A stretch of 64,000 nucleotides of DNA. Source: Hyalangium minutum (GTDB lineage: Bacteria > Myxococcota > Myxococcia > Myxococcales > Myxococcaceae). How positions within the stretch are numbered: position 1 is the stretch's first letter; each line of letters starts with the position of its first letter. A program made the position numbers and the translations under genes. A model generated the notes under the pieces. The model did no database searches and had not been told where the DNA came from. It saw only the letters and a list, made by a program, of their open reading frames with translations. Of this stretch, positions 33,051 to 36,352 are shown in pieces. The stretch spans positions 181,119-245,118 of the forward strand of contig NZ_JMCB01000028.1 in the NCBI RefSeq assembly GCF_000737315.1. The letters are read 5' to 3'.

Positions 33051-33896
33051 TCAGTGCTTGCCGAACTCCAGCTTGGCGCCCTTGCGCTTGGCGTAGATGA
33101 ACGCCTCCATGGCCTTCATCTTCGGGTCATCGTCCGCCAGCGGCTTGCCGCGCACCGGGTTCTCGATGCACCAGTTGATCATGTCTCGCAGCAGCGCCAC
33201 GCGCCCCAGCTGGACCTGATACTTCGGGTACGTCTCCGGGTGCGTGTTTGCCGCGTCCGGATGGCACATGTCGCACGACACCGCGATGGTGCCGCCCAGC
33301 GCTTCCGCGTCGTGGAAGATGCGGTTGCCCTCCTCCACGAACGCTTGGGTGGACGCGGCCCAGATGCGCTCATCGCGCTCGCTGAACGCGCCGTACGTGT
33401 GGCCCGTCTGCAGGCTGACGCCCTTCTGCGCGGCGACATCCGAGGCCCCCGAGGCTGCCGTCGCTCCCTCTGTCTTCGTCGAGCCGCCCGCCGCAGGCTT
33501 CTGCGGCGTGGGCGGCAGCGCCGGTGGGCTGCGAGGCCCCTGTGGCTTGGGGCTCGGCGGAGGCTGGGGCGCCTGCGCGATGGCCGAGCCGGGCAGTGGC
33601 ACGTCGTCCCAGTTCGCGCTCGGGTTCTTGCGGCGCCACTCTTCCATCAGCGCGCCCGTCACCTGCAGCGCCTGTTCGCGTGACATCCGCTCGCCCTCTT
33701 TCACGCCCTTCACCTCCAGGGAGGTCTCGCCATCACACATGCCGACGACGAGGTTGCCCTCCTTCGAGGTGGGGACTTTGTGCTGAGGCAAGGGCTCGGC
33801 CTTCAAGGTGGAGCCGGGGGGAGTGGCCAGCGCGGTGCCCCCGGCGATGGACAGCAGCGCGGTGAGACCTGTGAGGAGCTTCGTTCGCAGCGTCAT
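33051..33896 (-). CDS. Exported monoheme cytochrome c with TsdA/SoxA-like heme domain
   Basis: Sec signal; CDMCH; LRDMINWCIENPVRGKPL..KMKAMEAF resembles the TsdA RINxC..GxPL..EMxA segment. Confidence 0.75.
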   Translation of the reverse strand: MTLRTKLLTGLTALLSIAGGTALATPPGSTLKAEPLPQHKVPTSKEGNLVVGMCDGETSLEVKGVKEGERMSREQALQVTGALMEEWRRKNPSANWDDVPLPGSAIAQAPQPPPSPKPQGPRSPPALPPTPQKPAAGGSTKTEGATAASGASDVAAQKGVSLQTGHTYGAFSERDERIWAASTQAFVEEGNRIFHDAEALGGTIAVSCDMCHPDAANTHPETYPKYQVQLGRVALLRDMINWCIENPVRGKPLADDDPKMKAMEAFIYAKRKGAKLEFGKH

Positions 33897-33908
33897 GTCG
33901 GCGCCTCG

Positions 33909-35033
33909 CTAGTAGCTGGGGAGCTTGGTACGGGGGGGCGCATCCTTCTGCCCGTTGGACGCGAGGTAGCTCGCGCGCACGGTGATGGGGTTGCGCTCCC
34001 ACAGGTTGTAGAGTGCGTTGACGAGCCCGGCCTCGAGCACGTCCACACGCCCATCGCCGCAGCCGTCGAACTGGCTGAACGGATCCGGACGATTCATCTG
34101 GGTCGTGAGGCTGGGCAGCCCCTCGGGCGCGTACGGCCAGGGCCACGCGGTGGACAGCATCCCATGGAAGTAGATGTTGCCGATGCGGTTGGTGAGCAAC
34201 TGGTGCGTGTGGCCGTGGATGACCGTCACCTTGTCGAACGGCTTGAGGAGGGCCTGCACCTCGTCCGCGTCGTCCGTCCAGAAGTTCCACGGCCGGTAGT
34301 ACTTGTAGAGCGGCGAGTGGCTGAAGACGATGACCGGCGTCTTCTTGTCCACCTTGGCCAGGTCCTTCTGGAGCCACGCGCGCTGCTCGGCGCCGACCTC
34401 GAAGCGGGACTGGATGCCATTGTCCAGGCCGGCGACGATCTTCATGCGCTCCATGGGCGTGAGTCCCCGCTCCGTCCAGAAGTCCTTCTCCAGGATGGAG
34501 TTGAGCACCACGAAGTGGACGCCCTTGTGATCGAACGCGTACGTGGGAGCGCCGAACAGCTCGCGCCACTGCTCGCCCATGTCGAGGAACCAGTCGTGCT
34601 CCCCGACCATCATCTTCACCGGCGCCTTGACCGACTTGAGGATCTGCGCCCCCAGCTTCAGCTCCACCGCCTGCCCAAGCTGCGCCAGGTCACCACCGAA
34701 CAGCACGAAGTCCGGCTGCGGGTTGAGCGCGTTCACGTCATCCACGGCCTTGAGGATGGAGCGAACGAACCGGTCATTGAGCTTCTGGTCGTACAGGTGC
34801 GTGTCGGAGATATAGGCGAAGGTGAACTTCGGCTGCTCCGGGTTGCCCTGGGCCTCGGCCACCTGGATGAGCTGATAGCTCACCGGCGGCAGCAGCCCCA
34901 TGCCCGCGGCGATGCCCGCGGACATGCTCGCCACCCGCAGGAAGGCGCGGCGGTCCAGGCGCTTGAGCCCGTCGAAGAACTCCTGGCGCTCCTCGTAGTA
35001 CTTCGTCTCGACGCTCTTGAACTTGTTGGACAT
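33909..35033 (-). CDS. Tat-exported calcineurin-like metallophosphoesterase
   Basis: Twin-Arg DRRAFLR; SDTH, GGDLA, VGEHD, FSH, HGHTH motifs. Confidence 0.85.
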   Translation of the reverse strand: MSNKFKSVETKYYEERQEFFDGLKRLDRRAFLRVASMSAGIAAGMGLLPPVSYQLIQVAEAQGNPEQPKFTFAYISDTHLYDQKLNDRFVRSILKAVDDVNALNPQPDFVLFGGDLAQLGQAVELKLGAQILKSVKAPVKMMVGEHDWFLDMGEQWRELFGAPTYAFDHKGVHFVVLNSILEKDFWTERGLTPMERMKIVAGLDNGIQSRFEVGAEQRAWLQKDLAKVDKKTPVIVFSHSPLYKYYRPWNFWTDDADEVQALLKPFDKVTVIHGHTHQLLTNRIGNIYFHGMLSTAWPWPYAPEGLPSLTTQMNRPDPFSQFDGCGDGRVDVLEAGLVNALYNLWERNPITVRASYLASNGQKDAPPRTKLPSY

Positions 35034-35035
35034 GG

Positions 35036-36352
35036 CTAGGGCTTCCCTTCCTTCTTCGGCTCGCTCTTGACCGACGTCTCCGCGCCGTACACGCCCATCT
35101 CCGCCGGGTTCTTCTTGTCGAGGTCCGGGTTGGGCGCGATGTCCCCCAGGTTGCCCTTCTTCCCCATGGCCACCGCGGTGTCGCGCTCGGGGCGCTTGTT
35201 CTTCAGCCCGCGCTGCCGGGCCAGTTCCTGCTGGTTGAACTTGTCGAAGCGCGTGTCCGTGAGGGTGTAGAGGAACGCCACCAGATCGTCGATCTCCGGC
35301 TCGGTGAGCCCCAGCCGCTGCATGCCTCCATCCAGGTACGGGTTCTGAACGCCGCCCTTGTTGTAGTGGTCCATCACGTCCCACAGCGAGTTCAGCGAGC
35401 CATCGTGCATGTACGGGCCGGTGATGCCGATGTTGCGCAGCGTGGGCGTCTTGAAGGCCCCCACATCGTTCTCCTGCTTCGTCACCAGGAAGCGGCCCAG
35501 CTCGCTGAACTTCGTCTGCAGCGCCAGCTCGTCGATCTGCTTCTCGTCGCCGGTGCGCACCACCTTGAGCCCCTCGAGCGCGAGCTGCACGAAGTCCTGC
35601 TTGTGCGCGGCGATGCCGATGTTGTGGAACTTCTGATCCGAGAAGAGCGGCGAGACGATATTCGCCGCGTGGCATTCCGTGCACCGGCCTTTGCCGTTGA
35701 AGAGCGCCCACCCCCGCTTCTCCGAGGCGTTGAAGGCCTTCTCGTCCCCGTGGATGAACGCGTCGAAGCGAGCGCTGCCGGAGAACTGGGTGCGCTCGAA
35801 GGCGGCGATGGCCGCGGCCAGGTCGTCGTAGTTCACCTCCCGTCCGAAGACCTTCTGGAACTCGGCGGCGTACTCGGGAATGGCGCGGACCTTGGTCACC
35901 ACCGCCTCGGGCGAGGGCATGCCCATCTCGATGGGATTGAGGATGGGCAGCTTGGCCTGATCCTCCAGCGTGGCGGCGCGCCCATCCCAGAACTGGGAGG
36001 CGTTGAACATGGCGTTGAGCACCGTGGGGCTGTTGCGCATGCCCTTCTGGTCCTTGATGCCCACCGAGCGATCCTTGCCGTCCACGAAGCCCTTCTTGGG
36101 TTCATGGCAGGTAGAGCAGGACACGGTGTTGTCCACCGACAGCCGCTGGTCGTTGAAGAGCTTCTCGCCGAGCAGCACCTTGTCCGGCGTGGGCTCGGCG
36201 CCCGGGGGGACAGAGACCTTCCACAGGACTGGAGAGACTCCTGGCGGCAGCTTCGGAGGTGGGGCCGAAGCCTTGGGCGGCTCGGCCGCGTGGCTGACTC
36301 CAGCGGCTACCAGGAAGGCGAGCATCCAGGCGTTGGACGATCTGTGACCCAT
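35036..36352 (-). CDS. Diheme cytochrome c peroxidase/MauG-family protein
   Basis: Signal peptide; CSTCH and CTECH; RNSPTVLNA, QFWDGRA, FKTPTLRNI..PYMHDG; VMDHYNKGG places Tyr at the heme-2 distal ligand position. Confidence 0.9.
   Translation of the reverse strand: MGHRSSNAWMLAFLVAAGVSHAAEPPKASAPPPKLPPGVSPVLWKVSVPPGAEPTPDKVLLGEKLFNDQRLSVDNTVSCSTCHEPKKGFVDGKDRSVGIKDQKGMRNSPTVLNAMFNASQFWDGRAATLEDQAKLPILNPIEMGMPSPEAVVTKVRAIPEYAAEFQKVFGREVNYDDLAAAIAAFERTQFSGSARFDAFIHGDEKAFNASEKRGWALFNGKGRCTECHAANIVSPLFSDQKFHNIGIAAHKQDFVQLALEGLKVVRTGDEKQIDELALQTKFSELGRFLVTKQENDVGAFKTPTLRNIGITGPYMHDGSLNSLWDVMDHYNKGGVQNPYLDGGMQRLGLTEPEIDDLVAFLYTLTDTRFDKFNQQELARQRGLKNKRPERDTAVAMGKKGNLGDIAPNPDLDKKNPAEMGVYGAETSVKSEPKKEGKP

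Follow-up and report, generated by a model that had tools for sequence, protein, structure and literature searches.

A conserved triad of exported proteins in Hyalangium minutum, comprising a Tyr-type diheme protein, a metallophosphoesterase-fold protein and a SoxA/TsdA-type cytochrome, may form a Sox-like redox module

We analyzed a 64,000-nucleotide stretch of the Hyalangium minutum genome (RefSeq assembly GCF_000737315.1, contig NZ_JMCB01000028.1, positions 181,119 to 245,118 of the forward strand; hereafter, the window) and found that three genes on its minus strand, at window positions 33051-36352, form a triad whose synteny is conserved far beyond chance. In the order of transcription, they encode a diheme protein of the cytochrome c peroxidase (CCP)/MauG family, a calcineurin-like metallophosphoesterase (MPE) and a monoheme SoxA/TsdA-type cytochrome c. 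The deeper conserved unit is the pair of the MPE and the His/Cys cytochrome, and this pair is always wired to an electron acceptor. We interpret the acceptor as the Tyr-type diheme protein in the family of the window and, elsewhere, as a cupredoxin-like protein plus a cbb3 oxidase or as a high-potential iron-sulfur protein (HiPIP). The reading that we favor, still tentatively, is that the pair oxidizes and hydrolyzes a sulfur oxyanion in a Sox-like manner and that the electrons pass to H2O2 via the His/Tyr diheme enzyme. The substrate is the least secure part of this reading.

The three open reading frames (ORFs) lie where a sequence-only reading of the window had placed them and are as tightly spaced as it had described: 2 nucleotides separate the CCP stop codon from the MPE start codon and 12 nucleotides separate the MPE gene from the cytochrome gene. 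A GGAGG sequence is located 11 nucleotides 5' of the CCP ATG at 36352, the G+C content is uniform (~65-71%), and a scan of positions 32800-36700 gave no match to a sigma-70-type promoter in or around the operon. All three proteins are predicted to be exported, the CCP and the cytochrome by Sec-type signal peptides and the MPE by a twin-arginine (Tat) signal (DRRAFL, residues 27-32, positions 34938-34955), and their Pfam matches all exceed the gathering scores. Every motif quoted in the sequence-only reading is present in the translations. Its view of the pathway as uncharacterized is in agreement with our literature searches, which returned no publication on the triad module and a single relevant paper, on the diheme enzyme BthA (PMC6405878). 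The closest relatives are Archangiaceae, for example Hyalangium and Stigmatella.

Relatives of the MPE were collected in a scan of one genome per species, which yielded at least 588 stretches, and the 80 best of these genome loci, which we call the core family, were analyzed. Wider relatives were obtained in a search of 50%-identity representatives, whose contigs together with a metagenome scan gave 93 further loci. The metagenome scan employed a four-sequence alignment, a nine-sequence alignment being too divergent for use. The synteny counts cover those loci whose contig extends far enough. In the core family, the CCP gene is directly upstream of the MPE gene in 76/76 loci, and the cytochrome gene is directly downstream of it in 74/74. 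Represented in this set are Myxococcota, Binatia, methanotrophic Alphaproteobacteria (Methylocella, Methylocapsa and Methylocystis), Acidobacteriota, Planctomycetota and other groups, so the three genes, which the sequence-only reading had treated as a unit, are indeed kept together across phyla. Among the three, conservation is highest in the MPE, with an identity of 64-90% across several phyla in the 80 loci versus 47-82% for the CCP. Clustering of all ORFs flanking the 80 core loci revealed no conserved fourth gene, and only regulators recur. No ccoN was found in these loci, all of which carry the CCP where this could be checked.

The MPEs of a sister clade are 40-50% identical to that of the window, and their genes are followed by a cytochrome gene in 70/70 loci. 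This cytochrome is short (~140-170 residues) and has no counterpart of the N-terminal domain described below. Only L090, L102, L115 and L161 among the sister loci have a Tyr-type CCP immediately upstream of the MPE; L106 has a fifth, partial one at a distance of ~2 kb. The usual sister cluster has the following order: an extracytoplasmic function (ECF) sigma factor, an anti-sigma factor with an invariant CxxCH, a protein with an H...C-x2-H-x2-M motif and a CarboxypepD_reg domain, the MPE, the cytochrome, a SoxY-SoxZ fusion, CcoN, a CcoO-CcoP fusion, a small membrane protein and Caa3_CtaG. An example is found at L097:6212-15657 and others in ~70 metagenome loci (L092-L173); this cluster is apparently undescribed. 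The protein with the invariant H...C-x2-H-x2-M precedes the MPE in 51 of 61 sister loci and, judging by the motif alone as Pfam makes no call, is read as cupredoxin-like. CcoN and the CcoO-P fusion are encoded within 3.5 kb in 31 of 46 sister loci. The SoxY-SoxZ fusion, which carries the GGCG carrier motif, is present in 26 sister loci (PF13501, 3.8e-15; PF08770, 8.8e-11) and directly follows the cytochrome in 14 of the 46 that have enough downstream sequence.

The MPE-cytochrome pair is also seen in individual distant relatives at 41-46% identity, and in one relative a HiPIP is encoded directly after the cytochrome. Upstream of an MPE of 32% identity lies a gene for a cupredoxin whose copper-ligand motif is HCTIHPFMHG (L089:2-262), again an electron carrier beside this family, and an MPE of 35% identity resides in a histidine operon that has no cytochrome. 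The Tyr-type CCP and the cbb3 oxidase exclude each other: L102 and L161, in which a Tyr-type CCP is adjacent, have no ccoN in the 4-5 kb downstream. The single locus with both a CCP and ccoN, L153, has a Met-type CCP that is 3.3 kb away. With the CCP exchanged for the cbb3 oxidase, the cupredoxin-like protein or the HiPIP, the simplest view of the diheme protein is that of a terminal electron sink that uses H2O2. This role fits the PerR-like regulators described below as well as the catalytic turnover of H2O2 by BthA, itself a His/Tyr diheme enzyme (PMC6405878).

A rival explanation of the operon would involve no mechanistic coupling at all: an ordinary periplasmic phosphodiesterase could be co-transcribed with a peroxidase and its cytochrome donor as part of a general stress response. 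Indeed, CCPs normally have small cytochrome donors, PerR-like regulators are found upstream in some loci, and the best sequence and fold matches of the MPE are cyclic-nucleotide and glycerophosphodiester phosphodiesterases. The invariant gene order across phyla, the position of the MPE as the most conserved gene and the persistence of its pairing with the cytochrome where the CCP is missing speak against this explanation, and a His/Cys heme would be unusual for a simple electron donor. We consider it very improbable.

The cytochrome (281 residues, positions 33051-33896) is a member of the SoxA/TsdA family (PF21342 SoxA-TsdA_cyt-c, 2.8e-10; 40.5 bits versus a threshold of 27) and has both a CxxCH motif and a cysteine at the heme-ligand position. 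Its heme domain comprises residues 166-281 (33054-33401). The heme motif CDMCH (residues 208-212, 33261-33275) and the NWC of MINWCIE (residues 239-245, 33162-33182) bring His212 and Cys243 into alignment with His80 and Cys114 of Rhodovulum SoxA (1h31), and the same segment also aligns with a cysteine-bearing stretch of the second SoxA domain. C208, C211, H212, W242 and C243 are invariant in 71/71 cytochromes. The match of MINWCIE to the Cys-ligand region of TsdA and SoxA, which the sequence-only reading had noticed, is thus borne out by the alignment, and by homology the heme is probably ligated by His212 and Cys243.

The protein nevertheless falls outside both named groups. With the SoxA model proper (TIGR04484) it scores 35.9 bits versus a cut-off of 110, it consists of a single heme domain of ~115 residues, and the operon contains no SoxX-like partner gene. 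TsdA, which acts with TsdB or HiPIP, shares the Pfam heme domain and the Cys ligand, and the HiPIP gene mentioned above offers a further parallel. However, TsdA is diheme and needs no hydrolase, whereas the triad cytochrome has one CxxCH in 281 residues, no second heme domain and an obligatory MPE partner, and it matches TsdA chains with E=0.34. The AlphaFold2 model of the cytochrome has an overall predicted local distance difference test score (pLDDT) of 50.4; its heme domain is unusable, and a fold search with the model matched nothing.

The most reliable, if only moderately confident, part of this model is a small N-terminal domain (residues 35-98, 33603-33794; pLDDT 71-86), which the model and the alignment describe as a beta-hairpin followed by a helix, LMEEWRRKNPxxxW. 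The hairpin contains the motif GMCDGET with Cys54 (33723-33743), and H39, C54, D55, G56, T58, W87 and W96 are invariant in 40 sequences. The domain has no Pfam match and is restricted to the CCP-containing family. It is connected to the heme domain by a Pro/Ala-rich low-complexity linker (residues 99-165, 33402-33602; pLDDT <50), which varies in both length and sequence in the alignment. The N-terminal domain may act as a tethered carrier or in docking. An obligatory, SoxY-like carrier role of Cys54 was considered and downgraded, as the cytochromes of L053 and L074 have no such cysteine. Docking is the safer guess because both of these proteins keep the helix.

The diheme protein (438 residues, 35036-36352) belongs to the bacterial CCP/MauG superfamily (PF03150 CCP_MauG, 1e-58; 198.6 bits versus a gathering score of 25.6) and carries two heme motifs, CSTCH (residues 79-83, 36104-36118) and CTECH (residues 224-228, 35669-35683), as well as the inter-heme Trp in FWDGRA (35975-35992). 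Downstream of PYMHDG (residues 313-318), the Met-bearing segment of canonical peroxidases is replaced by an HYNKGG segment: DHYNKGG (residues 328-334, 35351-35371) contains Tyr330, which matches MauG Tyr294 column for column (DHYNK versus LFYNK) and also corresponds to the tyrosine in the IYSEGG of chain 6e1c, which we take to be MbnH. Tyr330 is invariant in 78/78 relatives. In addition, the position of the distal His of canonical CCPs (SVGHGW) is occupied by Ile here and by Val or Ile in 76 of the 78. The sequence-only reading had proposed a Tyr in place of the peroxidase Met at the second heme, and the alignment agrees with this prediction.

The two halves of the protein have different affinities. 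When the C-terminal half is used as the query, 6e1c and MauG are the best solved matches, above the true peroxidases, whereas the N-terminal half is nearest to canonical peroxidases (E ~1e-50). With the canonical bacterial CCPs and their small cytochrome donors, the triad shares the domain architecture, the distal-pocket residues Q-x3-P-x5-E-M and an operon-encoded cytochrome c. Yet the protein lacks the two hallmarks of these enzymes, a His/Met electron-transfer heme, which here has Tyr for Met at the electron-entry position, and an activating distal His on the loop of the peroxidatic heme, and its cytochrome is of the His/Cys type. With MauG, which acts on pre-methylamine dehydrogenase, and MbnH, which acts on MbnP, it has in common the diheme scaffold, a Tyr at the six-coordinate heme, the missing distal His at the other heme and the inter-heme Trp. 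The scores are below the cut-offs of both families (248.3 bits versus 443.85 for the MauG equivalog TIGR03791; 236.1 versus 362.85 for MbnH, TIGR04039), its gene neighbors are the MPE and the cytochrome, and neither mau nor mbn genes are found nearby nor is an MbnP-like gene among the neighbors examined. Because of these sub-threshold scores and the proximity of its N-terminal half to ordinary peroxidases, the diheme protein is placed, by sequence, in a separate Tyr-type clade. Its C-terminal tail of ~70 residues (window 35351-35038, residues ~370-438) is rich in Lys, Pro and Glu, poorly conserved in relatives and absent in solved CCPs and MauG.

The MPE (374 residues, 33909-35033) belongs to the metallophosphoesterase superfamily (PF00149 Metallophos, 3.7e-17; 63.8 bits versus 21.5). 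All of its metal-ligand motifs are present and invariant: DTH in SDTHL (34794-34808), GD in GGDLAQ (34680-34697), GEHD in GEHDW (34590-34604), SHS in FSHSP (34311-34325) and GHTH in GHTHQ (34200-34214). The sequence-only reading had listed GDLAQ and GEHD as variant metal motifs. The first is no meaningful variant, as only its GD matches in the GpdQ alignment (SGDIVNCG). The second, in motif III, is a true replacement of the Asn of GNHD by Glu; it is invariant in the core family and GEHDW is retained in 82 of 93 sister-clade MPEs. The core-family MPEs also share GGDLAQLG, MVGEHDW, FSHSPLY, WNFWT, GHTHQ, STAWPWPYAP and all nine Trp residues without exception. In full-length relatives with an identity of 30-50%, the Tat signal, GEHD and the first Trp of the WPW motif are retained; the second Trp varies in the more distant ones.

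By sequence, the solved proteins nearest to the MPE are GpdQ and Rv0805, and a fold search with the core of its AlphaFold2 model also places these two closest, with SoxB at rank 31 (template modeling score 0.2-0.3). These class III phosphodiesterases and CpdA thus provide the best matches for the MPE core. However, they are cytoplasmic or differently localized, have GNHD instead of GEHD, comprise 227-295 residues in the solved chains versus 374 here, and have no counterpart of the 180-215 insertion, of the WPWPY segment or of the C-terminal extension of ~75 residues. The MPE scores only 38 bits with the CpdA model (PRK11148) versus a cut-off of 225. It is no SoxB thiosulfohydrolase either: no SoxB model matched, and the protein has 374 rather than ~545 residues and lacks the C-terminal domain of SoxB. 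The model has a pLDDT of 59.7 (it was calculated from a 40-sequence alignment with all members at least 72% identical), and its residues 295-374, which include WPWPY, have a pLDDT <50, so the model does not show where the Trp residues lie with respect to the metal site. Within this region, GCGDGRVDVLEAGLVNALYNLWERNP (residues 323-350, window 33984-34067) resembles a single blade of the seven-bladed Photorhabdus PLL lectins; the whole-sequence E=2e-7 stems from repeated weak matches, and the likeness may reflect a shared beta-hairpin or chance.

The WPWPY motif (residues 297-301, 34131-34145) was central to the sequence-only reading, which had proposed WPW as the site where the hydrolase undergoes maturation by the diheme enzyme. 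In this MauG- or MbnH-style maturation, the diheme enzyme would react with H2O2 to form a bis-Fe(IV) state and modify Trp297 and Trp299 or the metal site of the MPE by hole hopping, creating a protein-derived cofactor; once matured, the MPE would have the His/Cys cytochrome as its redox partner. The Tyr ligand position is invariant, the CCP and MPE genes are only 2 nucleotides apart, and WPWPYAP and all nine Trp residues do not vary in the core family, so the conservation that the proposal presupposed is present. Furthermore, all functionally characterized His/Tyr relatives oxidize partner proteins, and MbnP, which like the triad MPE has a W-x-W motif, is modified at it (PMC11951088). The nearest precedent for the gene pairing is BthA of Burkholderia, which is always encoded beside a putative purple acid phosphatase, a member of the MPE superfamily that its authors suggest it may oxidize (PMC6405878). 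That precedent differs from the triad in several respects: BthA is a distant relative of the diheme protein (6nx0, E=2e-16), and its partner is a predicted outer-surface protein with no reported cytochrome (PMC6405878).

The distribution of the motif weakens the maturation proposal. Of the 93 sister MPEs, 82 retain T[SA]WPWP, only four of them with a Tyr-type CCP directly upstream, and in the remaining sister clusters a cbb3 oxidase takes the place of the CCP, as would be expected of an electron acceptor and not of a maturase. The variation of the second Trp in more distant relatives points in the same direction. Trp297 aligns with residue 217 of GpdQ, a His that is presumably a second-sphere active-site residue; this would favor maturation, but the alignment of the segment is weak (4.7 bits). 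On balance, we regard maturation as rather unlikely.

The MPE fold could also be a redox catalyst in its own right, acting on a non-sulfur substrate such as phosphite or another oxyanion, Mn(II), Fe(II) or Cu, with the cytochrome and the diheme protein carrying the electrons off. Several features agree with this. The family is consistently encoded with electron carriers and not with phosphate-scavenging genes, and the Asn-to-Glu replacement, which the wider family shares, provides the metal site with a further anionic ligand. Tat export is in keeping with a cofactor that is loaded in the cytoplasm, electrons could travel along the invariant Trp residues, and copper-handling genes such as Caa3_CtaG are present in the sister clusters. 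On the other hand, no redox chemistry is known for the metallophosphoesterase fold, no Pho-type or metal-homeostasis genes adjoin the triad in the window or in the flanks examined, and the specific homology of the cytochrome is to sulfur enzymes, with SoxYZ in the 26 sister loci. This explanation therefore seems unlikely to us. A further possibility is that the hydrolase fold has become a redox enzyme, with the diheme protein using H2O2 to install a Trp-derived cofactor at the invariant WPW or to bring the Glu-containing two-metal site to a high-valent state, and with the His/Cys cytochrome carrying the electrons of this new type of periplasmic dehydrogenase; it is more doubtful still.

We return to the Sox-like reading, which we favor because the cytochrome is homologous to the catalytic heme of SoxA and TsdA, because SoxYZ fusions are present in the sister clusters and because SoxB is a precedent for sulfonate hydrolysis by a member of the MPE superfamily. 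The sulfur-based option of the sequence-only reading gains independent support from the SoxY-SoxZ fusion and the cbb3 oxidase encoded beside the MPE-cytochrome pair, and its choice of substrate stays conjectural. Like the Sox system (SoxAX, SoxYZ and SoxB), the triad combines a His/Cys SoxA-type heme domain with an exported two-metal hydrolase of the MPE superfamily that reaches the periplasm via Tat, and the sister clusters add the GGCG-bearing carrier. It differs from the Sox system in that the window has no SoxX, SoxCD or SoxYZ, the hydrolase is on the GpdQ/Rv0805-like branch and not on the SoxB/5'-nucleotidase branch, and the proposed electron acceptor is a diheme protein of the peroxidase family.

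According to this reading, the triad would be one self-contained periplasmic redox module with the MPE and the cytochrome as its core. In a two-electron step, the His/Cys heme would oxidatively couple the sulfur of a cysteine with a sulfur oxyanion, either thiosulfate or sulfite. In TsdA, sulfur coupling takes place at the heme's own Cys ligand; here, the acceptor would be Cys243 or, possibly, Cys54 of the tethered N-terminal domain. The MPE would then hydrolyze the terminal sulfonate to sulfate, so that the job of SoxB would be done by a different branch of the superfamily. The two electrons would exit through the low-potential His/Tyr diheme protein, which would reduce H2O2. The low potentials of His/Tyr hemes (MauG) and His/Cys hemes (TsdA, SoxA) would suit direct electron transfer between the two proteins. 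In the sister clade, the pair would pass its electrons to the cupredoxin-like protein and the dedicated cbb3 oxidase, with O2 as the acceptor. Overall, the operon would encode a substrate:H2O2 oxidoreductase that is induced under peroxide or envelope stress.

The regulators near the triad are compatible with such an induction. Ten core loci outside the close relatives of the window (L040, L061, L066, L068, L070, L073, L074, L076, L078 and L025) have a Fur-family gene directly upstream, ~100-300 nucleotides from the CCP gene, with PerR or Irr/PerRA/PerRB as the best NCBIfam matches. These regulators are of three different subtypes, which are found at the same place in unrelated phyla. Six loci encode an ECF sigma factor together with a zinc-finger anti-sigma factor ending in CxxCH. 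The anti-sigma factor (L021:8481-9287, L097:6774-7619 and relatives) has a zf-HC2 domain at its N terminus, a single membrane span and a C-terminal domain that ends in the invariant CxxCH, and its gene adjoins the MPE-cytochrome pair in both clades. This architecture suggests a heme-binding periplasmic sensor.

Several observations weigh against the Sox-like reading. The MPE is related to SoxB only at the level of the superfamily, and its nearest relatives are phosphodiesterases. No tblastn match to SoxYZ was found in the window or in the 80 core loci, as the sequence-only reading had anticipated for the triad, and even in the sister clade SoxYZ is present in only about a third of the clusters. 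Moreover, the fusion scores best with a model named quinoprotein dehydrogenase-associated SoxYZ-like carrier, and such carriers are therefore no proof of sulfur chemistry. In the cytochrome, His195, His219 and Met239 are likewise invariant in 71/71 sequences, so that the case for Cys ligation is one of homology, and the hairpin Cys54 is missing in two core loci. The His/Tyr diheme enzymes of known function, MauG and MbnH, oxidize proteins and do not serve as electron sinks. The matches of the Fur-family regulators to PerR-like models are below the curated cut-offs. Finally, both AlphaFold2 models (pLDDT 50-60, without heme) are too poor for docking.

The module is common, as judged by the at least 588 stretches with an MPE relative in species-representative genomes and by the ~5,000 protein clusters that match the MPE at E<=1e-10. 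Among the named relatives listed, all names are generic: metallophosphoesterase, c-type cytochrome or, by homology, thiosulfate dehydrogenase, the last being given to triad-type cytochromes in the JGI annotation. If the Sox-like reading is correct, the module would allow many bacteria, including myxobacteria, Binatia, Methylocella, Methylocapsa and Acidobacteriota, with many records originating from soil metagenome projects, to pass electrons from sulfur oxyanions to H2O2 or O2 by a compact and horizontally mobile pathway that is independent of SoxB, SoxX and molybdenum enzymes. It would also be the first case in which a His/Tyr diheme enzyme has the physiological role of a respiratory-type peroxide reductase, and it would give a functional context to the unexplained pairing of BthA with a phosphatase. 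If the diheme protein is a maturase instead, the MPE would contain a new protein-derived cofactor. Culturable carriers of the triad include Corallococcus, Myxococcus and Methylocapsa.

Some myxobacteria have two paralogous triads, with ~80% and ~74% identity to the MPE of the window. Examples are Vitiosangium sp. GDMCC 1.1324 (L020 and L029) and Hyalangium versicolor, in which they are on two contigs. In Vitiosangium, only the triad of the second type (L029) is followed by an ECF sigma/anti-sigma pair. A Myxococcus-type triad of 82% identity is found in L017 (BNCN01000005.1), which is deposited as 'Comamonas sp. KCTC 72670'. Its proteins share 90% clusters with Myxococcus virescens and M. hansupus, and the assembly looks mislabelled or contaminated.

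The genes that flank the triad in the window are unrelated to it and encode a DUF2171 protein, an LPG_synthase_C protein, a ClC channel, a MarR protein, a Sel1 protein, a TPR protein and MreB. The same is true of the more distant glycosidases, peptide transporter and peptidase. Positions 9550-24783 contain a glycoside hydrolase (GH) cluster, likewise unrelated to the triad, with a GH1 enzyme, two GH3 enzymes, one of which has 1491 residues and three F5/8 type C domains, and a CBM_4_9 protein.

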